Made by a program: the position numbers and the translations under genes. A stretch of DNA of 64,000 nt from Syncephalis fuscata S228 (Eukaryota; Fungi; Zoopagomycota), in the NCBI GenBank assembly GCA_025786725.1, contig JAHLTZ010000009.1, positions 496,001 to 560,000 on the forward strand, written 5' to 3'. Under the pieces are notes generated by a model. It saw only the letters and a list, made by a program, of their open reading frames with translations. It made no database searches and had not been told where the DNA came from. Shown here one piece after another: positions 1-63,012 of the stretch. The first letter of the stretch is position 1. Each line of letters starts with the position of its first letter.

Positions 1-655
1 AACATATTTATATTCATAAATTTTTTGGTAATTGCCGAATTATTATATGGATTATTCTATTCAGTATGTCATTTACAATGATTGGCAACAGTTTGATACT
101 GCTTCAAAAGACCTATCTGGTGCTTTGTCGACAAAATGGATACTTTATATTAGTATTCCATTTATAATGGCACAGCTCGCCTTTGTCCCATTACAATTTG
201 TTATAGTTTTTTACTTTAGAAGAAAAAGTTGGTTGTATGGATTACTCCCTCAGGCTTTCTATGGTATTGGTTTCTAGTTAATGTGCCAATCAATGTGCTA
301 TTCTCTGTTATCTTTTGCCACATTGCTTTAAAGCAGTATCGTTTATTTGGATCAGATGCATGGAAGAAATTGGCACGCGATGGAATACAAGTAATGGCTT
401 TGGCCACGTTATGCAATACTCTTGTTCAATAACTCCTATTATGCCTATAAGCAAAGCCTATTCTGACGAATTTTTCATCATAGATTGGTAAGTAATGATA
501 AATAGTTGTTTATATAAAACTAACATAAAAATAGGATGTTTGTTACAACAATACTAATCAATCATTGCAAAAATGCATCCAGAAATATTGGCTTTGCACA
601 CCAACCAAAAACCGATTACATACTTAATTTATCTCAAATTGCTACTACAAAATAA
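1..655 (+). pseudogene. Orphan 7-TM GPCR-like family, subtype A, copy A1 (5'-truncated by window edge, frameshifted)
   Basis: Clear paralog of 11284/25901 copies (KQYRLFGSDAWKKLARDG). Intron 488-534; exon 2 ends ...SQIATTK-TAA at 655. At least three 1-nt deletions relative to paralogs, which may be sequencing errors. Confidence 0.75.
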
Positions 656-1066
656 TTTGTTAATAAATATGCGTATTAGCATTCGTGTTATAAGCAAACC
701 TTTAAATTAGCAACTTAATTATGTGTAAAGCTTTATAAATAGAATATACTTGTTTTTATTTGTTGTAATTATGTGTTGAAATAGTGCTTGCTAGCATAGA
801 TTATTTATCACGGAAACAGGTGTAATAATAAACATGTGATTAATAAAATAATGAATACAACAAAAGCATATATATTATTTAGCATCGAATTTCAGTACAC
901 TATAGAGCATATCACCAGTAAATTAATAATTTTATTAATAAAACGACACTTTAATCAAATTACTATTTAAAATTGCTATATTTATTTTCTTTATAAATTA
1001 GCTGATGTAAATAGGTGATGGGCAAACTTTTTAAATAAATGAAAAACAATATCAATATATTCTAAA

Positions 1067-2818
1067 AATAAGCTATATGTCTTAATATATTATTTATTAT
1101 AATTATTGTTGATAGAATGCTTATCGCGTGAGCTATTTGAACGATGGTGCCCAGATACAAAAATGGTGTTATTATTACTGGTTATTCGATCGATGGTACA
1201 TTGGCCAAGGTAATTGTATTTAATCACCATCTAATAGCTTATTAACATTGCTATTAGCATATCCTTAGTGAACCGTCTGAAATACAATCAATGGCCGGTG
1301 CTAAGCTGCCACTACGCATGTCGGTCGACTACATTTCCTTTTCAGCTCACGTTGATTTTACGCAAAACAGCAGTTTATTGAAGAGGTTGATGCACCAAAT
1401 CTAGTAGTCACATATAGCAAGTTGGCATTAGATATAGCTAATTACGACTAGGTATTGGTCCACGGTGATGCAAATGCTATGCATCGACTACGCAATGCAT
1501 GGAAAGCCGCTACAAAGAACGCAACAAGCCGGTCAACATCTACACGCCGCGTAACTGCGAGACAGTACAGCTTCATTTTCGAGGCGAAAAGCGTGCCAAG
1601 GTACTACTGATATTGGAGCACACTGAATCAAACACTAATACGGCAATTTAATGGTTTATTGCCATGCTAGACGGTAGGGAAATTGGCCGAAAAAATGCCT
1701 ATTGAAGACCAATTGATATCGGGTGTCATGGTGGCAAAAGACTACCAGTACAGCATTATGGCATCGATGGATCTGGAAGATTTAGTGGTCTATCGACAAG
1801 TAGAATCCGCCAACGCATGAGCATTCCATGTCGTGCAACTCTATCATTGGTGCGCTATCAACTGCAGCAAATGTACGGCGCCATTGATGAATCTAGACTG
1901 AATCTCGAATCAGCCAATAATGATTGGTCAAAGCCGGCTACCGTCAAATATACCGTAAGTAGGACGATGATCTTTCTATTGCTTATTGACCATTTATATC
2001 GATGTTGCAGATTATGAATGCCGTCGATCTAATTCCCGGTCCAGATTCTGGCACTATGACGCTCGAATGGGCTGCGTCGCCAGTTAATGACATGGTTGCC
2101 GACTCGATAGTGGCCCTTTTATTGGGTGTTGTCGATACTAGTCCGGCCTCAGTTAAATGTACGCTACTGGGAAAACACATACCGGTTCTAACGCCTTTTT
2201 AATGTACCATTTAGTGGCCGGCCAATCAGGATCCTGCTGTTCTTCCCCTCAAGCCTCTTCCATTACAGAGATGGACGTCAAGGAGGAAGCGGAAGAAAAG
2301 GAAGAAGAAGAAGCTTTAAAACAGACTATTAAGACTGAAATTAAAGATGATGAAAATGCAGACTTGGCCGCTGCTAAAAAGGAGGCAAAAGCAGAAGCCA
2401 CCGATGCTGCTAATGGCCTCAATGCTATTGCGTCAAAGGCACGTCGATCCGGCGGAGATAGCATTGATACGGCAGGCTGGGCAACCTTTTTGCGTGAACA
2501 ATTCGACAATGTTGAAATCAAATCACATCCATCCCGTATTCGTATCGCTATTGATGACGTGTCGGCCGAAATCAATTTAACAAATTTGGTAAGTAAAGGA
2601 AGGCAAACAAGCAAGCTAATAAACTAACGACACATTAATGTCTATATGGATATGTATATCTATATCTGTTCGCCTTATATCCCTTCTACTTAAATGATTA
2701 CAAACACTATCAACAACCATGCAGTGCATTTCAACAACATCCCTTGAATTCCGAAAGCGGCTCGAGCCAGTTGTACAACGAATTGCACTTACACTACAAC
2801 CTATTGAATGATTTGTTT
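1067..2818 (+). pseudogene. Inverted partial duplicate of the 3' half of YSH1 (no start or catalytic N-terminus)
   Basis: Reverse complement of 12674-14433. Identical ORF translations at 2157-2627 and 12865-13335. Begins inside a YSH1 intron; about five 1-nt deletions in its first 750 bp. Confidence 0.9.
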
Positions 2819-3341: not shown

Positions 3342-5114
3342 ATGTTTATCGAAGAAGAATGGTCGTTGGCGACAATTCTATCTATTATTATACCGGCGGT
3401 ACTATACTATCTTATCACACTGACTGTCTACGGCATCCAGTCGCGTAACTATCCTATCTACTTTGCACCGCGCTCTCCGCTGCTTACGATATGTGCCTCA
3501 CTACTTGGATTTTGTATCAGCTTTATAGGCGTTTTACGCCGATACAATATGCATTGGATACCTTGTCTTGCTGTCCATTGGGTTATGTATATAGGATTTA
3601 TTAGTTGGCAATTATTGATAGCAGCGCGTGCCTATCGTCTCTATTGTGCTATTAATCGACATGCTTTTTTAGTTGAAATAGCACCTTGGCAGGTTAATAA
3701 TACTGGTTATCTTGATGCATCTTGGATTAAACAGAATCAAAGCAAGCGGACCGAAAGACGTTTTTATATCGCAATTGGTGCAACCATTCTTGTCACAGCC
3801 ATTGTTGCACTGGTAATTCAAATAATCATTGGAAATAATGCAAAGCTAGCCCTTGAAGATTATTTGTATAGTGATCCAAAGACCCATATTCTTTACTATA
3901 TACGTTGTCGTGCAATGGTATGGAATATCTATCCATTTTTTACTATTTGGGGTCTTATTATGATGTATACCGTGCCTGCTGGTATTTATTATTTGCGTCA
4001 TTATCCAGATCATTTTGGCATCCGCATGGAGTTGGCGGCCATTAGTGTTATAACTTTAATAACTTTTATTGGCTATTTGGCATGGAGTATTATTGAAAAG
4101 AGAATATCACTACTTTGGCCCGGCGGCATGTTTATTATTACCCATAGTATTAGTACATTAATGCCACTTTATGAAGCATGGAAACGACAAAGACTAGCAA
4201 AACTTGTAACAAATGTAAAGTTTGAAGAAACGTTTAATTGCGATAATGATGTGTGGCGGGCATTTTGTCAATACGCTGCGCGTGATTTCTGTGCTGAAAA
4301 TGTATGTTTTGTTGAGCAATACCGCAAGTTAATTCAACGCACCGAACAAGCAATTATTGCAGAATGTGACGAGAACGACGATGTTGCCTCGCAACCATCA
4401 ATGTCGACAGAACAGAATCGGCATTGTCGTCGTTCGTCATCATTGCAGCTACATACATCCTATGCAAAACGACTCTATAGTCGACTGTTACACATATCAC
4501 GGGATGGTATTTCAAGCCGAGTCGACCATGGCGAGGCCAACGAGCTTATTAACATGTCGCCGTTATTGCAGCAACAGACACAGCGGCAGCCACGTAAGAT
4601 CCGTCGGCTGCTTTCGGCAGACAATGCAAAAAATAGTACAACTTTTGACACGAGCGCGTTTAATGCGTCAGTATTAGCCGAGACTGCATTGCCGAACATG
4701 TCCGCACTACCGATGCAACAGCGCCCACATTCACAATCACTACCATCAGGTGCAAACACTACTGCCACCGGTGATGAAAAACTCGCCTTTACCGGCGCTA
4801 GTGTGGCGGATATCGACCAGAGAGCAATTCCATTATCGGATCAACCCGACGCTCAAGTACCAATGTCGCTTATTTCTGCTTATCGCGTGCTATTCGAGAC
4901 GTTTATTGTGGATGGTGCACCATTGCAGCTTAACATTTCACATGCAGCACGTGTACGGGCGACAAGTAAAATCCGAAGCTACGCCTATACTATTGGCATG
5001 TACGCCGAGGTATACGCTGAAATCAAATGGTCATTATGGATCAATACGTTTCCCAAATTCCTTCAGGCCTACGAACGAGATCTGATAGCAGCCAACGATG
5101 TTATGCCGAGATAG
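3342..5114 (+). CDS. 7-TM receptor fused to C-terminal RGS domain (GprK/AtRGS1-like), intronless, 590 aa
   Basis: Seven hydrophobic helices in residues ~10-280. RGS motifs AFCQYAARDFCAENVCFVEQY and FETFIVDGAPLQLNIS...EIKWSLWINTFPKFL, separated by a long low-complexity insert. Confidence 0.85.
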   Translation: MFIEEEWSLATILSIIIPAVLYYLITLTVYGIQSRNYPIYFAPRSPLLTICASLLGFCISFIGVLRRYNMHWIPCLAVHWVMYIGFISWQLLIAARAYRLYCAINRHAFLVEIAPWQVNNTGYLDASWIKQNQSKRTERRFYIAIGATILVTAIVALVIQIIIGNNAKLALEDYLYSDPKTHILYYIRCRAMVWNIYPFFTIWGLIMMYTVPAGIYYLRHYPDHFGIRMELAAISVITLITFIGYLAWSIIEKRISLLWPGGMFIITHSISTLMPLYEAWKRQRLAKLVTNVKFEETFNCDNDVWRAFCQYAARDFCAENVCFVEQYRKLIQRTEQAIIAECDENDDVASQPSMSTEQNRHCRRSSSLQLHTSYAKRLYSRLLHISRDGISSRVDHGEANELINMSPLLQQQTQRQPRKIRRLLSADNAKNSTTFDTSAFNASVLAETALPNMSALPMQQRPHSQSLPSGANTTATGDEKLAFTGASVADIDQRAIPLSDQPDAQVPMSLISAYRVLFETFIVDGAPLQLNISHAARVRATSKIRSYAYTIGMYAEVYAEIKWSLWINTFPKFLQAYERDLIAANDVMPR

Positions 5115-6468: not shown

Positions 6469-8235
6469 ATGGCCTCGCGAATTCACGCTATATATTTGCT
6501 ATATCCTCCTGTCTTTTACTTAATTACATTGGCACTATATTTGTATCAATTCTGGCAATGTCCTAAATATTTCAAAGCTCGATCGCCATGGCTTACAGTG
6601 TGTGCATCAATAATTGGTTTAGTAATAACAGCTTTTACTTTTCTACGGCAATACTCAAATAGCACTATACCTTGTCAGGTTATGCTTTGGGTAAACAATC
6701 TTGGTTTTATCGCCTGGCAGGCACTGATGGTCACTCGTACCTATCGTCTATTTTGGACGATGCGTCGCCATAGCGATCTTGTCAAGGCAGCCCCTTGGCA
6801 AGTAAATAATACTGGCTATTTGGATGCTTCTTTAGAAAAGAAGTATAAAGATCGCACCAGCGAATGGCGCTCCTACTCATTCTTAATAGCAATGTTGATA
6901 ATTGCCGCAGTTGTTATTATAACAGTTCAGGCTGTAGGGAAAAAAGAAGATAAAGATTTAAACAGATCTGTTAATAACACTCGTCGCCAGCTAAACCAAG
7001 ATGACGGCACGGAAGACAACCACAGCGCGGAAAACAGCCACAGCTATTGGGCAGAATGTCATTTGCCCGAATGGCATCGATATCCATTGCTTGTCATTTG
7101 GGGCATAGTCATAGTGTATACCGTATTTAGCGGTCTATTTAAACCAAGTCAACTGCGAGAAAACCTTATTATACGTCTCGAATTGATCGCAATTTATTTG
7201 ATTACCATTGTTATATATGTGTGCTATATTGTTTGGTGTGCAAAAGATTCCCATTTCACTATGAGATGGCCATGCGCCATGTATGTAATTACACATATCA
7301 TCAGCGTGGTTGTACCGTTATACGAAGTGTGGAGACGTCGCCGTCTGATACACAAAGTAACTAGCATTGAATTTGATGAAGCCTTGGAGCGCAATGACAG
7401 CGTGTGGCATGCGTTTCAGCGTTATGCAGCTTTTGACTTGTGTGCTGAAAGCGTTTGTTTCATCGAGTCTTATCGCAAATTAATGGCTCAAGTTAACGAA
7501 CATAAAGAAACTTTATTTAAAAAGGGAACGAAATCTTCAATTAAAGCACACAGCCGATTACGGCGAGGCTTTGAGGAGACGGATCAGCTTGAGTACGAAA
7601 ATACTAAATCGTCCTCATCGCTTCCATCGTCCTCACCACCAGGCTATACTCAGCGTGTATTCCAACGACTACGTCGATTTACACTCGACTCAGTGCCGCC
7701 CAGCACGACGAGTGAGAACAACCAGCTGGTCTGTGTTTCACCGCACTCAGAGACAAGCGATAGCAACAGCCATCAGTGCAACTTTCCCTCTGCCGACTAC
7801 GGCATAACAGCTATACCTCCAAGCCCGGCATCCTTGTCACGTGTCATGGGTCTTTCTACCACCAATGAGAGTTCTTCAGAATTTAAATCACCCCATAATA
7901 GCATGGAATCGATTAGTAGGGCATCTGAAGCATCATTAAAGTCATCCAATTCAATGGCTTCATTGGCTACAGCGCATCAGTTACCACGCGTGTTAATACC
8001 AGCATACCGTGGCATTTTTGAAACTTACATTCGAGACGGTGCCACTCTTCAGCTTAATATTACCTATGCGGCAAAGACAAATGTTACGAATCGTGTTCGC
8101 GAATACGCATATACATTCGACATGTACGATGAAATATACGCCGAGATCAAATGGTCGCTTTGGACCAATACATTTCCTAGGTTTATTGAAACCTATAGAC
8201 AGGATTTGACTTCAGCCAATATAGCAACAGTGTAG
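6469..8235 (+). CDS. 7TM-RGS protein, tandem paralog of 3342-5114, intronless, 588 aa
   Basis: Shared motifs RSP-LT, IPC, APWQVNNTGYLDAS, AFQRYAAFDLCAESVCFIESY, FETYIRDGATLQLNIT, EIKWSLWTNTFPRF. Confidence 0.85.
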   Translation: MASRIHAIYLLYPPVFYLITLALYLYQFWQCPKYFKARSPWLTVCASIIGLVITAFTFLRQYSNSTIPCQVMLWVNNLGFIAWQALMVTRTYRLFWTMRRHSDLVKAAPWQVNNTGYLDASLEKKYKDRTSEWRSYSFLIAMLIIAAVVIITVQAVGKKEDKDLNRSVNNTRRQLNQDDGTEDNHSAENSHSYWAECHLPEWHRYPLLVIWGIVIVYTVFSGLFKPSQLRENLIIRLELIAIYLITIVIYVCYIVWCAKDSHFTMRWPCAMYVITHIISVVVPLYEVWRRRRLIHKVTSIEFDEALERNDSVWHAFQRYAAFDLCAESVCFIESYRKLMAQVNEHKETLFKKGTKSSIKAHSRLRRGFEETDQLEYENTKSSSSLPSSSPPGYTQRVFQRLRRFTLDSVPPSTTSENNQLVCVSPHSETSDSNSHQCNFPSADYGITAIPPSPASLSRVMGLSTTNESSSEFKSPHNSMESISRASEASLKSSNSMASLATAHQLPRVLIPAYRGIFETYIRDGATLQLNITYAAKTNVTNRVREYAYTFDMYDEIYAEIKWSLWTNTFPRFIETYRQDLTSANIATV

Positions 8236-8991
8236 TCTCAGCACCATTTATTTACTTTTCCTTTTAGAATCTGCACACATTAGCAATGTTTTTTTTAAAA
8301 AAAAACTCACAAATTTATTATTGTTTACTTGGCTACAAGGCCAGTTTAAAACAAAACCGTCAACTGTTTTCTTTAATTTATTAATACATGTGTATTACAC
8401 CATATTATTTTACTCAGTGTTGTCATTAGTGTTATGTAAAACCGTTTTTTATTAAACAAATAAAAACAATGCTAATAAGAACAAGAGTCAATTTACTCCA
8501 AATGTTAACGTATCATAAAACAATACATCGGTAATATAGCGAATATGTTAAAAGGATAGATTTTGTTTGACACCAAAGCTCAATATATTATAAAAATATT
8601 ATTAGTAAAATAGTGCATTTATTAATAAAATGGGATTTTAAAATAAGTATCATTTTAAAGTTGCTAGCTTTGTCTAGTATTCATATAACTAGACTAAGGC
8701 GTGGCTAACGATATATTTTAGGACATAAAGCAATTGACCACTAGTTTAACAAACATAAGACACCTGTTTTGTTTATTAAACTTACTATTTTCACTTAAAG
8801 TGTTGTTTACTGCTAGTTTAAATATAATTACATATTTATCTAACATTAACTAGTGGCATTTTATTAAATACGTTTTGTATATAAACAGTTGTATATTTTA
8901 TTAAAGATTTAAATTACTTTAATACTTATTGTCTATATGCAATTTGTATTCAAATAAGCTATGTATACATGCAATATGTCACAGCAGTTAT

Positions 8992-9966
8992 TTATTTTGC
9001 AGTAGCAATTTGTGACAAGTGAAGTATATGGTAAGTTCTAGGACGATAGGCAGAATGATTTTCATTGCCCATATTTTGACAGTGTCTAATCAATATGGCT
9101 GCAACGATCATCCTATAAATATATTAGATATATACATACAATTAATTGCTAATGCTTACCAGTCGATGGGAAAAAGTATATCGCTATTAGCATTGTCGAA
9201 ACGACTAATTATAAGGGTGCAACAAATAAGATTGGTTAATAATGCCAGACATACTGTCTGTATCCCATCCCGTGCTAGTCGTTTCCATGCATCAGATCCA
9301 AATAAGCGGTATTGATTGAAAGTAACACGGCAGAATATGATTGAAAAAAACACGTTGATGGGTGCATTTACTCCAATCCAGTACCAAAGCAAAATAGGTG
9401 GATAGTAGCCTTCACAGCCAAGTTTCGCTTTCAAAACGAAGAAACCGTAGTATATCAAAATAAAAGCATAACCCATTTGCGGCAATATAAGGAGAATGCC
9501 AACATAAATAATCCACTTTTTTTGATAGAGAACCAAGCGAACTTTTAAAAGAAGAATCAAACTATTTAAAATCATTCCTAGCGAAGTAAAAAACCCGGCT
9601 GACCATATAAGCATTCTACAATTAATGACATAGCCCATCAACATGATTATACATTATGTTATACAAAGTACCAATGACAGCGAGTAGTAAACAGCACCAT
9701 GAAAACATACTACGCGGTCGCGATATGGTCATTTTGGTAGTTATAACAATATTGTGTACAAAAATACAAAGCAATATAGTGGAAAATATCATTTGAATTT
9801 GTATGCCTGATAAGCGAAGACGCTGTTTGTCGATATGACCTGAAGCATCCATTAAAAAATCAGGCACGCTTATTTCACCAAGTGGATTAAGCGGAATACC
9901 CCATTGCTTTGTAGCATTATGCCTCCATTCAGTTTGCGTTGGATCGGTATAATTAATAAACGGCAT
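8992..9966 (-). CDS. Orphan 7-TM family subtype B, copy B1 (one frameshift near 9645; pseudogene or error)
   Basis: MPFINYTDPTQTEWRH start at 9966. Intron 9159-9113; exon 2 ends SQIATAK-TAA at 8992. About 2 nt shorter than the intact 28197 copy near 9645. Confidence 0.75.
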
Positions 9967-10614
9967 TTGCGATTTTGTAAATAATATATTAGTAGTATAT
10001 AAATGGCTAGGTAATAGAGATACAGTCGCATAAATTTAAATGTTTCATAGTGAGATATTTGGGACAAAGAGCATTACCAGTTTTATTCCTTGTGCATGTT
10101 AACTGATGCAGTGCACGGGTGTGCAGTCAAATATGCACATGACATTAACTACAGCACTACACATAATCTAAAGCTGGCTGCAATCCCAAGTTGCATAATG
10201 TTAATAATAAGTAGAATACTAAAATTAAACATAATACTGTGCCACAGCAGCATTATAACATTAATGCTCACGAATAATAGATAGAAAATAAACTTATTAA
10301 ATGTTTGTAGGATTTACATCTAGCAGAAATACAACAGCAGCATGTATAACCATGGCATGCATTGTGCCGTTTTTAGTAATTTTAGACTGGTAATTGGCAT
10401 AGCTCACTTGAGTGCTTGCTTAATGATAGGTGATTTCTATGTTTAGACACCATGTATGTCTGGAATTGACTTGTCTTAAAAACCTAAAGACAAAGTCACG
10501 TATTGCTATCACAGTACAGTTGCTTAGGTAGATTATCAGAATTAAATTAAATGAATACTATTGTAAACAAGTACTATACTATTGTGCATGTTCTAATTTC
10601 TATTCTACAGTTTT

Positions 10615-11040: not shown

Positions 11041-11283
11041 GCGGATATCATATACATACAGCTATTCACTTCAGTATTATCGTGGCACATGCAACAATTT
11101 CAAGATGCATGACAGGTTTATGACAATAGATAATTGGTCCGTTCATATTATAGCCAGCACTTGATGGCTACAAGGCGTACTTCCTAGTTGTATCCACACT
11201 CTTTCAACTATTTGACCAAAGTTTTTATTAACACACACTAACACATTTATTATTGTATATTGTATTATTGCTATATATATATA

Positions 11284-12260
11284 ATGCCAGTCATTAATTA
11301 TAACAGCCCGAAATATACTGAATGGATTAACAGCGACATAAAACAATGGGGAATTCGCCTTCATCCACTTGGTGAAATGCGTATATATGATTTTTTTATG
11401 GAAGCTTCTGGAGATATTAATAAACAACGTCTTCGATTGTTTGGTATATATACCCAAACTGTAATATTGGCTATAGCATTTTTTATATTTGCACGCAATC
11501 TTGTTATTGCCAGCAAAATGGTCATATCACAACCTCATAGCATGATATCCTGGTGCTGTTTTATTCCTTCTATTTGGGGCATTATAACTAGTCTAACTAT
11601 TATATTTATGGTATTGAATTCCCTTAGTAATTGCCGAATTATTATATGGATTATTCTATTCAGTATATCATTTACAATAGCTAGCAACAGTTTGATACTG
11701 CTTCAAAAGACCTATCTGGTGCTTTGTCGACAAAAATGGATATTTTATATTAGTATTCCATTTATAATGGCACAGCTCGCCTATGCCCCCATTGTAATTT
11801 GTTGTGAATTTGCCATTATAGAAGAAAAAATTGGTTGTGCAAATTACTATCCTCAGTTTGTTCTTTGGTATTGGTTTTTAATCAATGTACCAATCAATAT
11901 ATTATTTTCGTCTATTTTTTGCTACGTTTCTCTAAAGCAGTATCGTTTATTTGGATCAGAGGCATGGAGGAAATTGGCACTAGATGGAATACAAGCAATG
12001 GCTTTGGCCACGTTATGCAACACTCTCTGTTCAATATTTCCTATCATGCCTATAAGCAAAGCCTATTCTGACAACTTCTTCGTCATAGACTGGTAAGTAA
12101 TAGCAAATGGTAGCGTATATAAAACTAATATGCACACAGGATGGTTGTTACAACAATATTAATTCATCATTGCAAAAATACAGGCAAAAATACAGACTCT
12201 GCACACCATCCAAAAACTAATCATATCCTTAATTTATCTCAAATTGCTACTGCAAAATAA
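11284..12260 (+). CDS. Orphan 7-TM family subtype A, copy A2 (intact, 2 exons)
   Basis: ATG 11284 (MPVINYNSPK). Intron 12093-12139 GT-AG splits the Trp codon of D-W; stop 12258-12260. Seven hydrophobic segments. Confidence 0.85.
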
Positions 12261-23357: not shown

Positions 23358-23612
23358 ACAATGATGACGGCAATTACTTGTCGGTAATGATGTATACGGC
23401 GTGTGTATGTTTATCTATCGATGTTGTTATAATAAACGTGCAATTTATTAATGATTTAATAGTATTTTTAATGTTTTGTATCTATGGTTTATTAGTAAAA
23501 TAATTACATATTTCTCTACTTAAATATACACTAATTTAATATTATGTTTTCTACTATAAAGCTGCACTCCTAATAAGCTATATGAATACAATACATCCAC
23601 GTATCATTTTAT

Positions 23613-24585
23613 TTAATTTGCAGTGGCAATTTGCGACAAGTGAAGTATATGATTAGTTTTAGGACGATATCCGGAGTTATCATTATTTCTCATTTTTTGA
23701 CAGTGGCTAATCAATATCGTTGCAACAATCATCCTATAAATAAATTAGATATATGTATACAATTAATTGCTAATGCCTACCAGTCGATGGGAAAAAGTAC
23801 ATCAAGATTAGCATTGCCAATACGACTAACTATAATAATGCAGCAACCAAGATTTGTTAATAATGCCAGACATATTGTTTGTATTCCATCCCGTGCTAGT
23901 TGTTTCCATGCATCAGATCCAAATAGGCGATATTGATTTAAAGCAATACGGCAGAATATGATCGAGGAAAATACGTTGATGGGTGCATTTACTCCAATCC
24001 AATACCAAAGCAGAATGGGTGGATAGTACATAGCACAGCCGAGTTTAACTTTAAAGTAAAAAAGCAATAGTGTATCAAAATAAAAGCATAGCCTATTTGA
24101 GGCAATATAAAAATAATACCAATACAAGTAATCCACTTTTTTTGATAGAGAACCAAATGAACTTTTAAAAGAAGAATCGAGCTATTAAAAACCATTCCTA
24201 TAGAAGTAAAAAACCCGACACCATACTATCATTCTGCAATTAATGGCAAAACCTATCAACATGAATGTTTGCATTATACTAAGTATAGTGCCAGTAACAG
24301 CAAGCATTGAACAAAACCATGAGAGTAGTTTACGCGGTCGCGATATAATCATTTTGGTAGTTATAACAAATTGTGTGCAAAAATATAAAGCATTATAACA
24401 GAGGATATAAATTGGATTTGTATAACTACTAAACGAAGACGCTGCTCGTCAATATGACCTGTAGCTTCCACCAAAAAATCAGGCACGCTTATTTCACCAA
24501 GTGGATTGAGCGGAATACCCCATTGCTTTGTAGCATTATGTCTCCATTCAGTTTGTGTTGGATCGGTATAATTAATAAACGGCAT
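23613..24585 (-). pseudogene. Orphan 7-TM family subtype B, copy B2 (several frameshifts)
   Basis: MPFINYTDPTQTEWRH start. Homology continues across separate ORFs (24361, 23989, 23777). Same intron position; exon 2 ends SQIATAN-TAA. Confidence 0.7.
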
Positions 24586-25900: not shown

Positions 25901-26889
25901 ATGTCTACTATTGATTATAACAGCCCGAAATATGCTGAATGGATTAACAGTGATATAAAACAATGGGGAGTTCGCCTTCATCCACTTGGTGAAATGCGTA
26001 TATATGATTTTTTTATGGAAGCTTCTGGTGACATTGATAAACAGCGCCTTCGACTACTTAGTGTACAAGTTCAAATTGCAATGTTTGTTATAACGTCTTT
26101 TATATTTGCATGCAATCTTGTTATTGCCAGCAAAATGGTCATATCACGACCTCATAACATGATATCCTGGTGCTGTTTTGTTCCTGCTGTTTTGAATATT
26201 ACAGCTTGTTTGATGAGTATATTTATATTATTGAATTTCTTTGGTAATTGCCGAATTATGATATGGATTTTCTTATTTAGTGTGTCATTTACAATGATTG
26301 GCAACAGCTTAATATTACTTCAAAAAGCCTATCTGGTGCTTTTTCGACAAAAATGGATACTTTATATCAGTACTCCCTTTATAATGGCACAGCTCTTCTT
26401 TGCCCCCATTATAATTTGTTATAGTTTTTTTACTTTAGAAGAAAAAGTTGGTTGTATGGATTACTACCCTCGGAACTTTCTTTGGTATTGGTTTTTGATT
26501 GATGTGCCAATCAATATACTATTCTCATCTATCTTTTGCCATGTTGCTTTAAAACAGTATCGTTTATTTGGATCAGAGGCATGGAAGAATTTGGCACGCG
26601 ATGGAATACAAACAATGACTTTGGCTACATCATGCAATATTATTTGCTCTATTCTCATCATCACGCCTTTGGTTGAAATCAACAGCGACTCATTTTTTAC
26701 CGTAGATTGGTAAGTAGTGTCAAATAAACAATTGTATAAAACTAACATTTACTTAGGCTGATTGTGACAACAATACTGGTCAATCATTGCCAAAATATGG
26801 GCAAAAACACTAGGCATGCACACCGTCCAAAAACCGATCATATTCTTGATTTATCTCAAGTTGCTACTGCAAAATCTATAAATCATTGA
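25901..26889 (+). CDS. Orphan 7-TM family subtype A, copy A3 (intact)
   Basis: 270-aa exon 1, intron 26710-26756, exon 2 ends SQVATAKSINH-TGA. Confidence 0.85.
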
Positions 26890-27220: not shown

Positions 27221-28197
27221 TTATTTTGCAGTGGCAATTTGCGACAAGTGAAGTATATGGTAAGTTTTAGGACGATAGGCAGAATGATTTTCATTGCCCA
27301 TATTTTGACAGTGTCTAATCAATATGGTTGCAACAATCATCCTATAAATATATTAGATATATACATACAATCAATTACTAATGCTTACCAATCAGAGGCA
27401 AAAAGTACATCACGATTAGCATCGTCGAAACGACTAACTATAGCTATGCAGCAAACAAGATTTGTTAATAACGCTAGACATATTGCCTGTATTCCATCTT
27501 GTGCTAGTTCCTTCCATGCATCAGATCCAAATAGATGATATTGCTTTAAAGCAATACTGCAGAATATGATTGAAAAAAACACGTTGATTGGTGTATTCAC
27601 TCCAATCCAGTACCAAAGTAGAATGGGTGGATAGTAAACATCACAACCGAGTTTAGCTTCTAAAGTAAAAAAGCAATAATATATAACGATAAAACCATAA
27701 CCTATTTGTGGTAATATAAGAAGAATGCCAACATAAGTAATCCACTTTTTTTGATAAAGAACCAAGTGGACTTTCAAAAGAAGAATTAAGCTATTGAAAA
27801 TCATTCCTAACGAAATAAAATTTCCGGCCGACCATAATAACATTCTACAATTAAGGCCATAGCCTATCAACATGAGTATCTGCATTATATTACATATAGT
27901 ACCAACAGCAGCGAGTATTAAACAGCACCACGAAAACTTGCTATGTGGTCGCGATATGGTCATTTTGGTAGTTATAACAATATTGTGTGCAAAAATGCAA
28001 AGCATTAAAACAGAAAATACAATTTGAATTTGTATGCCTGATAAGCGAAGACGCTGTTCGTCGATATGACCTGAAGCTTCCACCAAAAAATCAGGCACGC
28101 TTATTTCACCAAGTGGATTGAGCGGAATACCCCATTGTTTTTTAGCATTATGTCTCCATTCAGTTTGTGTTGGATCGGTATAATTAATAAACGGCAT
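27221..28197 (-). CDS. Orphan 7-TM family subtype B, copy B3 (the only intact B)
   Basis: ATG 28197 by homology with other B copies. Intron 27388-27342; stop 27221-27223. Confidence 0.85.
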
Positions 28198-29517: not shown

Positions 29518-30494
29518 ATGCCAGTCATTAATTATAACAGCCCGAAATATACTGAATGGATTAACAGCGACATAAAACAATGGGGAATCCGCCTTCATCC
29601 ACTTGGTGAAATGCGTATATATGATTTTTTTATGGAAGCTTCTGGCGATATTGATAAACAGCGCCTTCGACTGTTTGGCATACAAACTCAAATTGCAATG
29701 TTTGTCATAGCGTTTTTTATATTTGGACGCAATCTTGTTATTGCTAGAAAAATGGTTAGATCACGATCTCGTAACATGATATCCTGGTGCTGTTTTGTTC
29801 CTTCTATTTGGGGCATTATAGCTAGTCTAATAATTATACTTATATTATTGAATTTCCTTGGTAATTGTCGAATTAGTACATGGATTTTTTTATTCAGTAT
29901 ATCATTTACAATAGCTAGCAACAGTTTGATACTGCTTCAAAAGACCTATCTGGTGCTTTGTCGACAAAAATGGATACTTTATATCAGCATTCCATTTATA
30001 ATGGCACAGCTCGCTTTTGCCCCCATTATAGTATATCTTAGTTTTGTTACTTTAGAAGAGAAAGTTGGTTGTGCAAATCACTATCCTCAATTTATTTTAT
30101 GGTATTGGTTTTTAATCAATGTACCAATCAATATATTATTTTCGTCTATTTTTTGCTACGTTTCTCTAAAGCAGTATCGCTTATTTGGATCGGATGCATG
30201 GAAGAAATTGGCACGCGATGGAATACAAGCAATGGCTTTGGCCACGTTATGCAACACTCTCTGTTCAATTTTCCCTATCATGCCTATAAGCAAAGCCTAT
30301 TCTGACAACTTCTTCATCATAGACTGGTAAGTAATAGCAAATGGTAGCGTATATAAAACTAATATGCACACAGGATGGTTGTTACAACAATATTAATTCA
30401 TCATTGCAAAAATGTAGGCAAAAATACAGACTTTTCATACCGTCCAAAAACCAATCATATCCTTAATTTAACTCAAATTGCTACTGCAAAATAA
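29518..30494 (+). CDS. Orphan 7-TM family subtype A, copy A4 (intact)
   Basis: ATG 29518, intron 30327-30373, stop 30492-30494. Confidence 0.85.
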
Positions 30495-34368: not shown

Positions 34369-34564
34369 CAAAGTTGTGGATTAACAACTATAATAAAATA
34401 ACATGATATTATTACATGTTTATACACAATGCTACTTTAACTTGCCATATAAATATACATTAAAAGTGAGCATGTTTTATTTATAAAAGATTTACACGTA
34501 GTTATTCCAACTAATTTAAAATTTAATTGTAACACAAATAATAATACGCATATTTTTCAATGCT

Positions 34565-35540
34565 CTGTATATTTGCAATAACTATTTCAGATATATTAAG
34601 AATGTGATCGGTTTTTGGATGGTGCGTAGAGCCAATATTTTTGCTCATATTTTAACAATGACGGATTAATATTGTTGTAATAACTATCCTGTGTGTATGT
34701 CAGTTTCATATAATCAGCCATTTACTACTACTTACCAATCCACGATGAAAAAATGGTCAGAATAGGCTTTGCCTATAGATGTGATTATGAAAGTAGAACA
34801 AATGGCACCACATAACGTGGACAAAGTTATTGTTTGTATCCCATCTAATGCCAATCTTTTCCATGCTTTCGATTCGAATAAACAATAATGCTTTATAGCA
34901 ACGTAGCAAAATATAGATGGGAATAGTATATTGATTGGTACATCAATCAAAAACCAATACCAAAGAAAGTTTCGAGGGTAGTAATCCATACAACCAACTT
35001 TTTCTTCTAAAGTAAAAAAACTATAACAAATTATAATGGGGGCAAAGGCGAGCTGTGCCATTATAAGGGAATACTGATATAAAGTATCCATTTTTGTCGA
35101 CAAAGCACCAGATAGGTCTTTTGAAGCAGTATTAAACTGTTGCCAATCATTGTAAATGACATACTGAATAGGATAATCCATATCATAATTCAACAATTAA
35201 TTGGTAAATTTATGAACATGGACAAAACTATTAAGCAAGTCATAATGTTTAAAACTGAAGGAATAAAACAGCACCACGAGATATGTTACGAGGCTGTAAT
35301 ACAACCATTTTACTGGCAATAACGAGTTACAACCAAATATATAAAGCATTACAACAAACAGAAAATTTGAATTTGTACTCCATACAACTGAAGGCGTTGC
35401 TCGTCAATGTCACCCGATGCCTCCATAAAAAAATTAAATGTGGGCACTTCGCCAAGTGGATGTAGACGAGCTCCCAATCGTTCTATGTGACTATTGATCC
35501 ATTCAGCGTATCGCTGACTATTGTAATCAATAGTTGGCAT
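34565..35540 (-). pseudogene. Chimeric 7-TM pseudogene C1 (C-type 5' end, A-type body)
   Basis: 5' end matches the 58172 gene. TGA at 35190-35192 replaces the Arg of the NCR motif; TAA at 34652-34654 lies in exon 2; several frameshifts. Confidence 0.85.
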
Positions 35541-37941: not shown

Positions 37942-38929
37942 ATGCCGGCTATTGATTATAACAGCCATGAATATGCTGAATGGATTAACAGTGATATAAA
38001 ACAATGGGGAGTTCGCCTTCATCCACTTGGTGAAATGCGTATATATGATTTTTTTATGGAAGCTTCTGGCGATATTGATAAACAGCGCTTTCGATTATTT
38101 GGTATACAAACTCAAATTATAATGACTGTTATAGCATCTTTTATATTTGGACGCAATCTTGTTATTGCCAGCAAAATGGTCATATCACGACCTTATAGCA
38201 TAATATTCTGGTGCTGTTTTATTCCTTCTGTTTTGGGCATTATAAATAGTTTAATAGGTATATTTATGTTATTGAATTTCTTTGGTAATTGCCGAATTAT
38301 GGTATGGATTATTTTATTCAATATATCATTTACAATGATTAGCAACAGTTTAATATTGCTTCAAAAGGCCTATCTAGTGCTTTGTCGCCAAAGATGGATA
38401 CTTTATATCAGTACTCCCTTTATAATGGCACAGCTCTTCTTTGCCCCTATTATAATCTATTATAGTTTTAGTACTTTAGAAGAAAAAGTTGGTTGTATAG
38501 ATTACTACCCTCAGCCTATTCTTTGGTATTGGTTTCTAATTAATGTGCCAATCAATATACTATTCTCATATATTTTCTGCCACATTGCTTTAAAGCAGTA
38601 TCGCTTATTTGGATCGGATGCATGGAAGAAATTGGCACGCGATGGAATACAAGCAATGACATTGGCCACTTTATGCAATACCCTCTTTTCAATATTTTCT
38701 ATCATGCCTATAAGCAAAGCCTATTCTGACGACTTCTTCATCATAGCTTGGTGGGTAATGATAGGTAACTGTTTATATAAACTAACATAAAAATAGGGTG
38801 TTTGTTACAACAATATTAATTCATTATTGTCAAAATACAGGCAAAAGTGCTGATTCTGCACATCGTCCAAAAACCGATTATATGCTTCATTTATCTCAAA
38901 TTGCCACTGCAAAATCAATAGCCTGTTAA
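37942..38929 (+). CDS. Orphan 7-TM family subtype A, copy A5 (intact; weak GTGGGT donor)
   Basis: Intron 38751-38796, stop 38927-38929. Nearly identical to the 62024 copy. Confidence 0.82.
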
Positions 38930-53927: not shown

Positions 53928-54692
53928 ATGCTTTTCTCATCCACTAGCGTTACTGCCTCCGCTCTGGTAGCACTCTCGGCCATCTCCAGCGTTGCCGCTC
54001 ACGGTTACATGTCCACCCCACCGGTGCGTGGCATCCAGAAGGAGTCCTACAGTGTTGACTCGCTTAAAGCACCCAACTGGGGTGGTGCTTTGTGCCGTGG
54101 TGAGCCAGCTGGCACAGTGACCACCGTTAGCAACACAGTGACCCTTGGCTTTACGATTACCGCTCCTCACGTTGGTTTGTGTCAAGTATTCATCCTTGAT
54201 GCCGATCTTACAAACTCGGTCAAGGTTGCCGAGAAGCTTGACTGTGCCGCTCCTGGCAAGGTTGGTCCGTGGACCATCACAATCCCTAGCAACATTACCG
54301 GTCGCAAGGTCATTCGTTGGTACTGGTCTGCTGCTCATGTCACCCCCAACGAGCCATACGAAAACTGTGCCGATGTTAACATTGGCGGTTCGTCCACTGG
54401 TAGCAACCCAGCCCCTGAAGCAACCTCTACCACCTCGACAACGACACCAGCGTCGACATCTACCTCGTCTGCAAGCGCTCCAACTAGTGGCTCGTCAACT
54501 GGCGCATATACACCAACGCCAGCTCCAGCTCCAGCACCATCATCCGGCAGCGGTTCTTGCCAACCAAACCAATATACCTGTAATGCTGATGGCCGACTTG
54601 GCCAGTGCAATTTTGGTAAATACGTCTGGATCAAGTGCGCCACTGGAACTACCTGCCGTAGCTCCGGCAACTACCATTACTGCGGCTACTAA
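53928..54692 (+). CDS. Secreted LPMO-like protein (His1; AA11-like or related) with Ser/Thr/Pro linker and C-terminal CBM19-like module
   Basis: Signal peptide ends VAA-HGYM. Second His in APHVG.C; RWYW...EPYENCADV; 6-Cys C-terminal module. Confidence 0.8.
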   Translation: MLFSSTSVTASALVALSAISSVAAHGYMSTPPVRGIQKESYSVDSLKAPNWGGALCRGEPAGTVTTVSNTVTLGFTITAPHVGLCQVFILDADLTNSVKVAEKLDCAAPGKVGPWTITIPSNITGRKVIRWYWSAAHVTPNEPYENCADVNIGGSSTGSNPAPEATSTTSTTTPASTSTSSASAPTSGSSTGAYTPTPAPAPAPSSGSGSCQPNQYTCNADGRLGQCNFGKYVWIKCATGTTCRSSGNYHYCGY

Positions 54693-56979: not shown

Positions 56980-58450
56980 TTACAAATAGCTAAATAAAAA
57001 ACAATTGAATATACTTACTGGAGTTAACCAGGATGAGCGCAAAAGAGTTATATCCGTTGCATTATTAAAAAGAAACTAATGATTGGTTGTCTTTACGTCG
57101 AAATTCAATTGGGCTTTATCATTGTTTGTTGCCTTGTGTATAAAAATGAGTAGCACAGACAGTTACTATTAGACTCAATATTAGTCAAATAGAATAATGA
57201 CTAAATATGTTGATTATACAACATTAAGCTAAATAGATTGGCTATTATTATGGCAATTGTATGTTTGAAAATACAAAACTACTAAATTTATAAGTAACAG
57301 TGTCAAATTGCTTAATCAAATCTAAATGCTGTTCGATTAGACAATCATTGTATCGAGTATGGTAATACAAATTTAATTTATTTGTATATTGTAACGCTAT
57401 TGCAAATCATTAACTCATACGTTGAGTCTATGATAGTAGCTGATAGGCGACAAAATACAACACGCTTAGCAATGTACGCGATATTGTTAGCCTTGATCGC
57501 ATAGCCATTTCCAAAGGCAATGTCGATTTTAATATGCCTTTTGTAATCAATCAATAGGTATTAGTAGGCAACTGTAGATGTAGAATTAAATTCCGTTACC
57601 ATAGTGGCTCGAGTAATACCGGTTATATATTATTAAGGTATGCATGGATGGTACTGGCATAGCACGCTGCTCAAAATCAGATATGGATTTGATAAATGGC
57701 AGATTACTGCTGAATAATTATCCTACTGCCAATAATTACATGGATCGCAGCCATCATTGAATGTATAGCTGTATTCATATCCAGTTTAATTAATACTAAT
57801 GGCTTTACATTGCTGGCGTGCTTATTATCCGGTAATCTTGCCGTAACGTATTCAAAATTTAACATTCGACAAGGCCTTTGTTTCTACTCATGCATTACAG
57901 GCAGTTTTAATGCAATATGACTTGGGGCGGCATCATATACATACAGCTATCCACTTCCGTATTATCATTCCGTATGCAGCAAGTTCAGGATGCACAACAT
58001 GGCTATTACAGTAAACAATTGGTCCATTCATATTGTGGCAGAAACTTGATGGTCGTGGGTTGAGCCTGGTTTGCATATACTTTTCAATTGTTCAACCGGC
58101 GTTTTTATTTAATTCTCCACCACATTTATTATTTTATACTGTATTATTGATACTTATATTGATTATTTATAATGCCAACTATTGATTACAATAGTCAGCG
58201 ATACGCTGAATGGATCAATAGTCACATAGAACGATTGGGAGCTCGTCTACATCCACTTGGCGAAGTGCCCACATTTAATTTTTTTATGGAGGCATCGGGT
58301 GACATTGACGAGCAACGCCTTCAGTTGTATGGAGTACAAATTCAAATTTTTCTGTTTGTTGTAATGCTTTATATATTTGGTTGTAATCTCGTTATTGCCA
58401 GTAAAATGGTTGTATTACAGCCTCGTAACATGGTCTCGTGGTGCTGTTTA
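56980..58450 (+). repeat. Probable source copy of the inverted duplication at 35270-36730
   Basis: Spans the LYS12 3' flank, the C2 upstream region and the first ~90 codons of C2. Confidence 0.88.
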
Positions 58451-59160
58451 ATCCCTTCGACTTTCAGTATTATGGCTAGCTTGCTGGCACTATTTTTGTA
58501 TCTGGGATTTCCTATCAACTGTCGAATACTTTCATGGTTTAGCGGATTTAGCTTGTCATCCACGATGATTGGCAATAGCTTAATACTGCTTCAAAAAGCC
58601 TATCTGGTAATTCGTCGGCAAAATTGGATAATTTTTATCAGCATTCCGATTATAGCAGCACAGCTTGTTTATGGATTCATCGTAGTCTACTACCATTTTT
58701 TTACCATAGAAAAAAAAGTTGGCTGTATGGCCTACTATCCCAAGGTGTTCGTGTGGTATTGGTTTTCGATTAATGTACCAATCAATCTACTATTTTCAGC
58801 TATCTTCTGCCGCGTTGCTATAAATCAATATCGTTTATTTGGATCGGAAGCATGGAGGAAACTGGCAATAGATGGAATACAAACAATGTCCTCAGCTGCG
58901 CTATGTAGCATTATTTGCGGTTTTTTCATTATTACATTTACAGACGAAATTAATCCAGACATATTTTTTGTTGTAGATTGGTAAGTGGTATTATTTAATG
59001 GTCTACGTGTAGTTTATACGTAATTAGGGTGGTTGTTACAACAATGCTGATTAGACATAGCCAAAACATTGGCAAGAATATGAATTTTGCACATCATCCA
59101 AAAACTAGCCATATGATTCGTTTGTCCGAAATTGCTACTGCAAGATCTGTAGAATATTAA
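58172..59160 (+). CDS. Orphan 7-TM family subtype C, copy C2 (intact)
   Basis: MPTIDYNSQRY start, intron 58981-59027, exon 2 ends SEIATARSVEY-TAA. Confidence 0.85.
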
Positions 59161-59748
59161 TAACCATGCAATTGTTATTTGTATTCTGAATACACTTTGA
59201 ACTTAATGATTTGACTGTGTAAATATTTTTTATAAATAAAATGCTTTGACATTAATTGTTGTAATAATATATGGCAAACCAATATTTACAGACATGATCA
59301 ATTTATTGCAAAGGCAAATATAACTATAGAATACATAATTGGTAAAATCATGGGAGCATTAATAAAAAACACTTCAACGGGCTATTATTAAAATTGCTAT
59401 TTTGCCTGGCAACTATAGGCCAAAGCGCGTGAAAGCACAACGATCAAAATTTTAAATAAATGGATAATAATAGCAGCACATTTTAAAATATGAAGCAATT
59501 GATAGTCAGTTTGACAAAAAATAAAATAACAGTTTTGTTTATTAAGCTTGATACTTTCATCTAAATCGTTCTTTACTATTGGCTTAAATAAAACAACTAT
59601 TTATCTAACATTAACTAGTAGCATCCTGTTAAATATATTTTGTAAATAAAAATTGCATTATTTCATTAAAAATTTAAGCTACTTTAATTGTCTATATACA
59701 ACGTCATTTATAATAATTTATATAGATGTAATATATCAACGCAACTTA

Positions 59749-60721
59749 TTATTTTGCAGTGGCAATTTGCGATATATGAAGTATATGATCAGTTTTAGGA
59801 CGATACGCAGAATGATTATTATTTCCTATTTTTTGACAGTGTCTAATCAATATGGTTGCGACAATCATCCTATAAATATATTAGGTATATGTATATAATT
59901 AATTACTGATCCTTACCAATCAGCGGGAAAAGTATATCAAGGTTAGCGTTGCCAATACGACTAACTATAGCAATACTGCAAATAATGTTGATTAATATAG
60001 CCAGGCACATTGACTGTATTCCATCTCGTGCTAGTTGTTTCCACGCATCAGATCCAAATAGGTGATATTGATTTAAAGCAATGTGGCAGAAGATGGCAGA
60101 AAAAAATAAATTACTTGGTGTATGCACTCCGATCTAGTACCAAAGCAGAATGGGTGGATAGTAGATAACGCAGCCAAGTTTGGCCTCCAAAGTAGAAAAA
60201 GAGTAGTATATCAAAATAAAAGCATAGCCTATTTGAGGCAATATAAAAAAATGCCTATATAAGTAATCCACTTTTTTTGATAAAGAACCAAATGAACTTT
60301 TAAAAGAAGAATTGAGCTATTAAAAATTGCTCCTAACGAAATAAAGAATCCAGACGACCATAACAGCATTCTGCAATTAAGGCCATAGCCCATCAACATA
60401 AATATGATTTTGCGCTAGACATACTGCCATTAATAGCGAGTAGTAAACAGCACCACGAAAACTTGCTATGTGGTCGCGATATGGTCATTTTGGTAGTTAC
60501 AATAATATTGTGTGCAAAAACACAAACATTAAAACAGAAAATGCAATTTGAATTTGAATGCCCGTTAAACGAAGACGCTGCTCGTCAGTATGACCTGTAG
60601 CTTTCATCAAGAAATCAGGCACGCTTATTTCACCAAGTGGATTGAGCGGAACATTCCATTGCTTTGTAGCATTGTGTCTCCATTCGATTTGTTTTGCATC
60701 GTTATAATCAATGAACGGCAT
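59749..60721 (-). pseudogene. Orphan 7-TM family subtype B, copy B4 (multiple frameshifts)
   Basis: MPFIDYNDAKQIEWRH start. Fragmented homology through LARDG and the conserved exon 2 (SQIATAK-TAA). Confidence 0.7.
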
Positions 60722-62023
60722 TTTTGGTTTTGTAAAAATAACAGCAATGCGTATAAATAACTAGATAATAAAGATATTGTCGCATCAATTTGAATGTTTT
60801 GCAATAAGATGGTCGAGTAAAGGCTATTACCAGTTTTACTTCTCATGCATGCTAACTGATGTGGATACACGGGGTGTTTTGACATGCATATAAACAACAT
60901 CAGCTGCTGTGTTACGCGCCATACAAGGTTGGTAACAATCACAAGTTGAATAATGGTAGTAATAGATAGGTACTAAACTTGAAAATAATACTGTATTATA
61001 ACAACACAAAAGCGTCAACGTCAACAACAAATTTATAAAATTACTAAATGCTTGTAAGATTTTGTATTTAACAACGTACAGCAGCGAATATCCGGTCAGA
61101 CCATGCAGCTTGAGCCATGTTATGCATTGTGCCGTTTTAGTAGTTTTAGGCTGGTAGCTAAAACAGCTCGCCTGAGTTTTTGGTCAGTGATACGTGATTT
61201 TTATTTGACACCATGTATGTCTACAATTGACTTGTCTTGAAAACCTACAGACAGAATTACGTATTGCTATTGTAGTACAGTTGCTTAGGTAGATTGTTAA
61301 AATCGATTAAATGAATACTATTGTGCATATTCTAATTTTATTCTACAGTATTAATATAAAGCAAAAATAAAGCTCAATGCCTGCTATGCTAAAGACGTTG
61401 TCTATTGACTAGAATGTGTGCTAATTGTGACTATTTCGCAACAGCATCAGTTACTCAATACGATTGTCATAATTGATATGCTTTGTCTAGCCTTTCATAC
61501 TAGTCACACTGGCTTTTTATCTTAAAAACTGGCCATTCACTTTAGTGGAACTGACCTTTTTTGTGGTATTTATAGCCATCCGATAACCAACATCCATATA
61601 GCACAGAATGACTAATTAACTGCGTAGTTATATTATGATTTAATCAAAAACTAATGGTTTTACATGGTCAGTTTTAGTAGCCACAAATGCCATTGCAACT
61701 TAGTATAATTCAGCGATCCGTTGAGGCCTTTGCTTTTAGTGGTGCGCAGCTGGCTATTCTTCTGTCATGTGGCTCGTGAACGGATATTATATACATACAG
61801 CTATTCACTTCAGTATTATCATGGCATAGGCGACAATTTCAAATATAACAGGTTTATGCCAATAGATAATTGAATTGTCCATATTATAGCCAACACTTGA
61901 TGACCACAAGGCGTACTTCTAGCTGTATCCACACTTTTTAATACTCAGCCAAAGTTTTTATCACACACACTACACATTTATTATTGTATATTGTATTATT
62001 GATATCTATAATATTCATACATA

Positions 62024-63012
62024 ATGCCGGCTATTGATTATAACAGCCATGAATATGCTGAATGGATTAACAGTGATATAAAACAATGGGGAATTCGCCT
62101 TCATCCACTTGGTGAAATGCGTATATATGATTTTTTTATGGAAGCTTCTGGCGATATTGATAAACAGCGCTTTCGATTATTTGGTATACAAACTCAAATT
62201 ATAATGACTGTTATAGCATCTTTTATATTTGCACACAATCTTGTTATTGCCAGCAAAATGGTGATATCACGACCTCATAGCATAATATTCTGGTGCTGTT
62301 TTATTCCTTCTGTTTTGGGCATTATAAATAGTTTAATAAGTATATTTATGTTATTGAATTTCTTTGGTAATTGCCGAATTATGGTATGGATTATTTTATT
62401 TAATATATCATTTACAATGATTAGCAACAGTTTAATATTGCTTCAAAAGGCCTATCTAGTGCTTTGTCGCCAAAGATGGATACTTTATATCAGTACTCCC
62501 TTTATAATGGCACAGCTCTTCTTTGCCCCTATTATAATCTATTATAGTTTTAGTACTTTAGAAGAAAAAGTTGGTTGTATAGATTACTACCCTCAGCCTA
62601 TTCTTTGGTATTGGTTTCTAATTAATGTGCCAATCAATATACTATTCTCATATATTTTCTGCCACATTGCTTTAAAGCAGTATCGCTTATTTGGATCGGA
62701 TGCATGGAAGAAATTGGCACGCGATGGAATACAAGCAATGACATTGGCCACTTTATGCAATACCCTCTCTTCAATATTTTCTATCATGCCTATAAGCAAA
62801 GCCTATTCTGACGACTTCTTCATCATAGCTTGGTAAGTAATGATAGGCAACTGTTTATATAAAACTAACATAAAAACAGGGTGTTTGTTACAACAATATT
62901 AGTTCATTATTGTCAAAATACAGGCAAAAGTGCTGATTCTGCACATCGTCCAAAAACCGATTATATGCTTCATTTATCTCAAATTGCCACTGCAAAATCA
63001 ATAGCCTGTTAA
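62024..63012 (+). CDS. Orphan 7-TM family subtype A, copy A6 (intact)
   Basis: Intron 62833-62879, stop 63010-63012. Confidence 0.85.

Follow-up and report, generated by a model that had tools for sequence, protein, structure and literature searches.

What kind of protein is encoded by a gene that is found twelve times, scattered among housekeeping genes, in a single stretch of a mycoparasite's genome, and how many of these copies are still genes? These questions are raised by a stretch of 64,000 nucleotides (nt) from Syncephalis fuscata S228 (contig JAHLTZ010000009.1, positions 496,001 to 560,000 of the forward strand; assembly GCA_025786725.1), referred to below as the window. An earlier note on its sequence had claimed twelve genes for seven-transmembrane (7TM) proteins resembling G-protein-coupled receptors (GPCRs); in them it had seen a chemoreceptor or host-recognition repertoire. 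The most fitting description of the array is that of a new GPCR-fold family, not classified so far, with seven genes that are intact and five copies that are interrupted. Its members appear to be seven-helix proteins with the fold and the topology of GPCRs and, judging from a structural model and from patterns of conservation, we favour with reasonable though by no means firm confidence the reading that they most likely constitute a repertoire of putative surface receptors. A role in chemoreception or host recognition is plausible.

Gene structure, fold and conservation

Twelve loci of one two-exon family were recovered in the window by tblastn with exon 1 of the copy c12 as query; the searches relied on single exons (1 or 2) or on two full-length models in the public collection, P0007 and P0010. 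The division of the copies into types A (n=6), B (n=4) and C (n=2), as first proposed, was reproduced. The second exon said to have been missed, which completes transmembrane helix (TM) 7 and carries a conserved HxPKT...LSQIATAK tail, is indeed present 3' of all 12 exon 1 copies, as found with the exon-2 peptide as query. In every copy exon 1 ends in ...TG and is followed by an intron of about 47 nt with the signals GTAAG(T/C)...CTAA(C/T)...YAG, the next exon starting with G; the splice donor of c09 (Table 1) is weaker than GTAAGT. The intron is in phase 2 within the codon of a TM7 Trp, at a position common to all 12 copies. Two public models, P0007 (c10, 313 aa) and P0010 (c06, 309 aa), are spliced exactly at this intron, and its position is kept in L001, a Logan contig that comes from a related species and is genomic rather than a transcript.

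The protein chosen for folding was P0007, an annotated full-length member of type C. Its AlphaFold2 model, built with 25 homologues (predicted local distance difference test score 80.4, predicted template-modelling score 0.76), has seven helices (residues 45-82, 87-110, 117-146, 152-174, 191-223, 226-255 and 263-290), a beta-hairpin in the second extracellular loop (ECL2; residues 176-189) and a small structured N-terminal cap. When this model was compared with the PDB by Foldseek, class A GPCRs took every one of the top 50 places (best E 2.8e-4, template-modelling score about 0.5), with SSTR2, ETB, rhodopsin, CXCR2 and the orexin receptor among the leading names, and no transporter or enzyme appeared among the top matches. 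In VIA-align, a search independent of Foldseek, yeast Ste2 came first (Z 16.4); over Foldseek's top 1000 chains the score of Ste2 was Z 16.5, with many GPCRs at Z 15-16, and the alignments with rhodopsin, LPA1, DP1 and CB1 extend into the N-terminal cap. As modelled, the fold is a GPCR-type 7TM bundle, in line with the seven helices and GPCR-like fold suggested earlier.

The topology is predicted to be that of a GPCR as well, with the N-terminus outside and the C-terminus inside. Loops predicted to lie inside carry a mean of 12.1 Lys and Arg residues versus 4.3 for those outside, the inside count being the higher in 100 of 101 sequences (positive-inside rule). The N-terminal 44 residues are acidic, with a NAT sequon in many members, and include the short, acidic and conserved cap W..NA(T)..WG.PLHPLGE, predicted to lie outside the membrane. 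Six residues are invariant in the 25 homologues (C117, R118, K142, C185, G235 and I236). The positions that are invariant or nearly so comprise G30 and E31 in the HPLGE cap, N72 in TM1, W90 and C92 in TM2, C117 and R118 at the top of TM3, L140, K142 and Y144 in the LLQKAY motif, C185 and Y189 in ECL2, P203 in TM5, and W228, L231, G235 and I236 in AWxxLAxDGIQ. All the motifs pointed out at the start (NCR, GC, LLQKAY and QYRLFGSxAWxxLAxDGIQ) are conserved, and the motifs are invariant across four species. The Cys pair proposed for TM3 and ECL2 was found in 25 of 25 homologues and in at least 85% of 101 sequences; C117 and C185 probably form the classical GPCR disulfide.

Conservation is unevenly distributed between the two faces of the protein. 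Family-wide, the cytoplasmic halves have an entropy of 2.10 versus 2.53 for the outer halves (p 8e-5), and in the 14 closest S. fuscata paralogues the values are 0.81 and 1.30 (p 5e-6). The most variable parts are ECL3, outer TM2 and ECL1, the least variable the end of TM3, intracellular loop 3 (ICL3) and inner TM5 and TM6; the strongly conserved cytoplasmic face is made up of LLQKAY at the TM3 end, the inner half of TM5 and QYRLFGSxAWxxLAxDGIQ in ICL3/TM6. Receptors whose ligand pockets have diversified, but which share a single intracellular partner, would be expected to show such a pattern. The extracellular cues bound via the variable pocket would be diverse and would come from the environment or a fungal host. 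The outer helix halves, together with ECL1 and ECL3, vary between paralogues, and one common intracellular partner, most plausibly the heterotrimeric G proteins of the organism, would transmit the signal. The ratio of nonsynonymous to synonymous substitution rates (dN/dS) in pairwise comparisons of the copies is 0.21-0.44, indicating purifying selection.

Sequence affinities and non-receptor alternatives

Several results weigh against a receptor role. Exon 1 of three copies and 35 full-length members gave no relevant Pfam match at E<=1 to 10, and the family profile matched none of the PDB sequences at E<=10, so that no solved GPCR was matched. The DRY and NPxxY motifs were not seen in the alignment of 25 homologues. 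Instead of varying, the N-terminal cap is conserved, and the genome has just two G-alpha genes for more than 100 putative receptors. Finally, microbial rhodopsins, TMEM87A (Z 14.5) and an adiponectin receptor reach Z 14-15.5 in VIA-align, near the scores of the GPCRs; since 7TM proteins that are not GPCRs score nearly as high, the evidence from the fold speaks for a 7TM bundle rather than for G-protein coupling.

Membership of the sequence families considered was not supported. For class A (7tm_1), there was no match to the profile hidden Markov model (HMM) at E<=1 to 10, and the two class A motifs are absent from the alignment; the CWxP motif was not seen in the family either. No HMM match to Ste2 (PF02116) was found in the proteins, and a genome search with PF02116 gave no match, but the controls of that genome search likewise gave none. 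The link to DUF6533 drawn in the earlier note was not supported, neither this family nor DUF7703 (nor any other in Pfam) being matched in 35 members at E<=1 to 10, and Chs7 and THH1/TOM1 were rejected for want of an HMM match. A literature search found no publication describing the family. As no tested member matches any Pfam model, Pfam-based catalogues of fungal GPCRs would miss the family as a whole.

The proteins could have a GPCR-like 7TM fold without being GPCRs, serving as scaffolds, cargo or trafficking factors or export chaperones of the endoplasmic reticulum (compare Chs7, THH1/TOM1/TOM3 and TMEM87-type proteins), or they could be receptors with another partner. The Atlas feature search points this way with its leads to a chytrid cluster auto-named THH1/TOM1/TOM3 (0.94) and to DUF7703 (0.88), although neither these leads nor that to STE2 (0.85) are supported by HMMs; the score of TMEM87A, the missing DRY and NPxxY motifs and the two G-alpha genes can be read in the same sense, as can the UniRef auto-name 'chitin synthase export chaperone' borne by one Thamnocephalis member. 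The UniRef auto-names of the few members that have one contradict one another, however, the others being GPCR family 1 profile, GPCR family 2 profile and Srx, and no Pfam match to the Chs7, THH1/TOM1/TOM3 or TMEM87-type families was obtained at E<=10. The top Foldseek matches are exclusively signalling GPCRs, and a family of more than 100 members whose outer face varies while the inner face is conserved is less what one would look for in a housekeeping chaperone than in a receptor diversified for ligands. We consider this alternative unlikely, but far from negligible.

That the family handles light or ions, as a pump or channel like microbial rhodopsins or a ligand-gated channel like insect odorant receptors, seems extremely improbable. 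The Z scores of microbial rhodopsins (14-15.5) are in its favour, but membership of that group was rejected: there is no conserved Lys in mid-TM7 for retinal and no match to a Pfam rhodopsin family. The predicted orientation, with the N-terminus outside, is the reverse of that of insect odorant receptors, the top ranks in Foldseek (3Di+AA) are held by GPCRs only, and for opsins a set of more than 100 paralogues would be without precedent. A repertoire of putative surface receptors remains the reading preferred here.

Duplication, decay and range of the family

Table 1. Positions of the family copies, of other features of the window and of related loci elsewhere in the genome (window positions unless a contig is named)
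Feature	Position	Strand	Remarks
c01	1..655	+	type A; truncated by window start; 6 deletions of 1-2 nt within the 488 nt of exon 1 that lie in the window; exon 2 present
c02	8992..9966	-	type B; one 2-nt deletion at about 9650 breaks exon 1; public model P0039 bypasses the site via an artificial intron
c03	11284..12260	+	type A; intact, two exons; head-to-head with c02; no public protein model found
c04	23613..24585	-	type B; three deletions in exon 1 (1, 2 and 1 nt)
c05	25901..26889	+	type A; intact; C-terminal half in partial public model P0019
c06	27221..28197	-	type B; intact; public model P0010
c07	29518..30494	+	type A; intact; head-to-head with c06
c08	34530..35540	-	type C; four 1-nt deletions; codon of the invariant Arg118 changed CGA>TGA; CAA>TAA in exon 2
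c09	37942..38929	+	type A; intact open reading frames; donor GTGGGT
c10	58172..59160	+	type C; intact; public model P0007
c11	59749..60721	-	type B; four 1-nt deletions; TGG>TAG at codon 197
c12	62024..63012	+	type A; intact; exon 1 62024-62832, intron 62833-62879 (47 nt, phase 2), exon 2 62880-63012
B/A unit, four copies	8715-12385; 23524-27004; 27051-30635; 59480-63127		from self-comparison
INO1	21887-23239		housekeeping neighbour of B/A units
DPP3 (M49)	32000-34368	+	housekeeping neighbour of units
Sortilin/Vps10 gene	about 40-48 kb		neighbour of units
Tandem genes, 7TM and RGS	3342-5114; 6469-8235	+	paralogous, about 590 aa each
Inverted repeat	1067-2866 / 12636-14433		1.8 kb, 98-100% identical
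LPMO_10/CBM19 gene	53928-54692	+	hydrophobic N-terminus
Identical family fragments	C10:26611, C13:748314, C98:17682, C101:474704, C188:11910, C189:11907, C191:11903, C192:11890		open frame 136 aa
G-alpha genes	C306:469482-470473; C306:484604-485961		15 kb apart

Self-comparison of the window revealed a unit of about 3.5 kb, consisting of a B gene on the minus strand and an A gene on the plus strand, head to head with about 1.3 kb between them. This unit, intergenic DNA included, is present four times at 81-86% identity; a C/A pair is also found, and between c09 and c12 a stretch of 1.8 kb is 97.5% identical (synonymous distance, dS, 0.013). Because introns and flanks were duplicated together with the genes, duplication took place at the DNA level, as the earlier note had argued from the shared intron position. 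The family grows via local duplication of DNA, the unit here being the head-to-head pair with its shared intergenic region, and copies are lost as well, in a process of birth and death. The dispersal of the copies among housekeeping genes also proved real, with INO1, DPP3, a sortilin/Vps10 gene and genes for a Beta-Casp protein and a double-stranded-RNA-binding-domain (dsRBD) protein as neighbours.

Two other features of the window were noted. An inverted repeat encloses a 9.8-kb segment with two genes combining 7TM and RGS regions, described below, and the c02/c03 pair; each of its arms has an acidic open reading frame (ORF) of 156 aa without a Pfam match, and one arm adjoins the Beta-Casp gene. 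Further along, a gene encodes a protein in which a putative signal peptide, judged by eye, is followed by LPMO_10, a linker rich in Ser, Thr and Pro, and the chitin-binding domain CBM19. Its product is a candidate enzyme for attack on the host cell wall in this mycoparasite.

Genome-wide, the family profile has at least 127 matching loci in the 29.36-Mb genome (all those scored, of 541 first-look candidates), and a 51-residue probe from TM5-TM6 matched at 150 of 150 scored places out of 270 candidates, that is at least 150. Many matches are exact pairs on two contigs, a redundancy that inflates the copy counts; since some of the matches are such duplicates, about 120-250 loci is a cautious estimate. 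On different contigs (Table 1) there are eight fragments of the family that are identical and have identical scores, and this copy seems to lie within a repeated element or on redundant contigs. Public annotation seems to undercount the family, since for four intact A-type genes (c03, c07, c09 and c12) no full-length protein was found in the public collection, only ORF-called fragments such as P0001 having been recovered.

An exhaustive HMMER search returned 342 clusters at 50% identity. The named matches examined come only from S. fuscata, S. plumigaleata, S. pseudoplumigaleata and Thamnocephalis sphaerospora, the remainder being metagenome or Logan contigs. On these matches, this appears to be a large, lineage-restricted family, found in Syncephalis and Thamnocephalis (Zoopagales). 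In the tree the seven intact window copies fall inside a 14-member clade formed of S. fuscata sequences only (Shimodaira-Hasegawa-like approximate likelihood-ratio test value 98), five A copies make up one clade (98), the Thamnocephalis sequences form a clade of their own with 20 members, and there is at least one 1:1:1 orthologue set across the three Syncephalis species. The S. fuscata-only clade and the 127-150 or more loci in the genome bear out the idea of an expanding family and indicate that the expansion is lineage-specific.

How many of the twelve copies are genes depends on how their interruptions are read. As loci all twelve stand, but twelve genes is too high a count, as no more than seven are intact as assembled. 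The other five are interrupted by 18 indels relative to intact relatives, all of them deletions of 1-2 nt, and among these broken copies only c08 and c11 have nonsense substitutions besides. A control for assembly error is provided by DPP3, in which positions 219 and 220 of the M49 profile fall on either side of a frame change at about 33367 (33364-33372), in an A-run and without an intron, the portion 3' of the change scoring 490 bits with Pfam M49. This frame change is almost certainly an error of the assembly, most likely the deletion of a single base, and some of the breaks in the family may therefore be artefacts as well. The dN/dS of the broken copies (0.24-0.34) is not raised, which argues against decay. 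The lineage-specific ratio of nonsynonymous to synonymous changes is about 0.7-0.9 for c02, c04 and c11, versus a neutral expectation of about 2.5-3, on counts too small to decide the matter; c08 is the exception with 6 nonsynonymous to 2 synonymous changes, also small counts.

The distribution of the deletions argues in the other direction. There are 18 in about 4 kb of broken copies, compared with a single one in the window's other coding sequence (about 14.6 kb), and the broken copies lie within 1-2 kb of intact ones; deletions so concentrated are far more than random error would give, which supports real decay. On this evidence c08 and c11 are very probably real pseudogenes, c08 being the best candidate for a true one, and the same is probable, with less assurance, for c01 and c04.

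Could the whole family then be a largely decaying, functionless repeat, dispersed duplicated DNA that keeps its ORFs by chance? In its favour, besides the five interrupted copies in the window, are open frames of less than 240 aa at 53 of the 150 scored TM5-TM6 probe loci, the several intact A-type copies that lack a public gene model, and the eight identical fragments. We nevertheless think this very improbable, given dN/dS of about 0.2-0.45 among the copies, motifs kept unchanged from species to species, a conserved intron position with conserved splice signals and orthologues retained in three Syncephalis species; some of the breaks, moreover, may be errors of the kind seen in DPP3.

Signalling context and comparison with known receptors

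If the proteins are receptors, as we favour, an obligate mycoparasite with a 29-Mb genome spends more than 100 genes on this one family, far above its canonical GPCRs, which are few in genome profile searches (one marginal 7tm_1 match and about three genes resembling cyclic AMP receptors). Against only two genes for G-alpha, the genome gave about 27 matches to the RGS domain, which makes its signalling set unusually rich in RGS by fungal standards. The window itself holds two tandem genes (Table 1) whose products combine an N-terminal 7TM region similar to 7tm_3 (E 5.7e-7, below the cut-off) with a C-terminal RGS region (19-20 bits, below the cut-off of 23.9), an architecture that resembles that of GprK/AtRGS1-type 7TM-RGS proteins.

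A bolder proposal, which we regard as speculative and on balance doubtful, is that the family arose from scratch or from an ancestor diverged beyond recognition, and that it constitutes in Syncephalis and its relatives a GPCR repertoire on the scale of chemoreceptors (more than 100 genes, compare the odorant receptors of nematodes and vertebrates). It would detect small, possibly lipophilic molecules of the host, such as signals of Mucorales, in a pocket lidded by the cap and the ECL2 hairpin as in rhodopsin and lipid receptors, and all its members would signal into the two G-alpha proteins, tuned by the unusually large RGS set. Provided only that its members are receptors, the family would offer a testable entry to host finding and recognition by early-diverging mycoparasites, and a new GPCR class for work on structure and evolution.

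Among known systems Ste2 (PDB 7ad3), the class D pheromone receptor of fungi, is the best structural match (Z 16.4-16.5 over 242-243 aligned residues, root-mean-square deviation 4.1 Å). It resembles the Syncephalis proteins in being fungal and 7TM, in its size and in having the N-terminus outside, as is predicted for them; sequence identity is only 10-11%, PF02116 is not matched, and Ste2 is single-copy as against more than 100 loci. As many class A GPCRs lie within 1 Z unit, this match amounts to a tie and does not point to Ste2 specifically. Class A GPCRs (7tm_1; SSTR2, rhodopsin, LPA1 and prostanoid receptors) have in common with the family the Cys residues at the top of TM3 and in ECL2, the ECL2 beta-hairpin and an N-terminal cap that can be aligned with rhodopsin, LPA1 and DP1 (from residues 7-13 of the model), and it is the PROSITE GPCR family 1 profile from which a few members were auto-named in UniRef; they differ in that 7tm_1 is not matched even at E<=10 and that LLQKAY stands at the TM3 end in place of DRY. 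DUF6533 and DUF7703 are likewise fungal 7TM proteins, the feature score of the latter being below the level of anything beyond a mere lead, and differ in the lack of an HMM match in the 35 members.

The mode of evolution has its closest parallels in the Pth11-like receptors of Pezizomycotina and the serpentine receptors of nematodes, which are known for large lineage-specific expansions by tandem or segmental duplication, many broken copies, and a variable outer with a conserved inner face. The Syncephalis family resembles them in its expansion, duplication, broken copies and contrast between the two faces. It lacks a CFEM domain and any sequence relation to them, and unlike them it belongs to an early-diverging lineage of mycoparasites (Zoopagales), with motifs of its own: the HPLGE cap, NCR, LLQKAY and AWxxLAxDGIQ.

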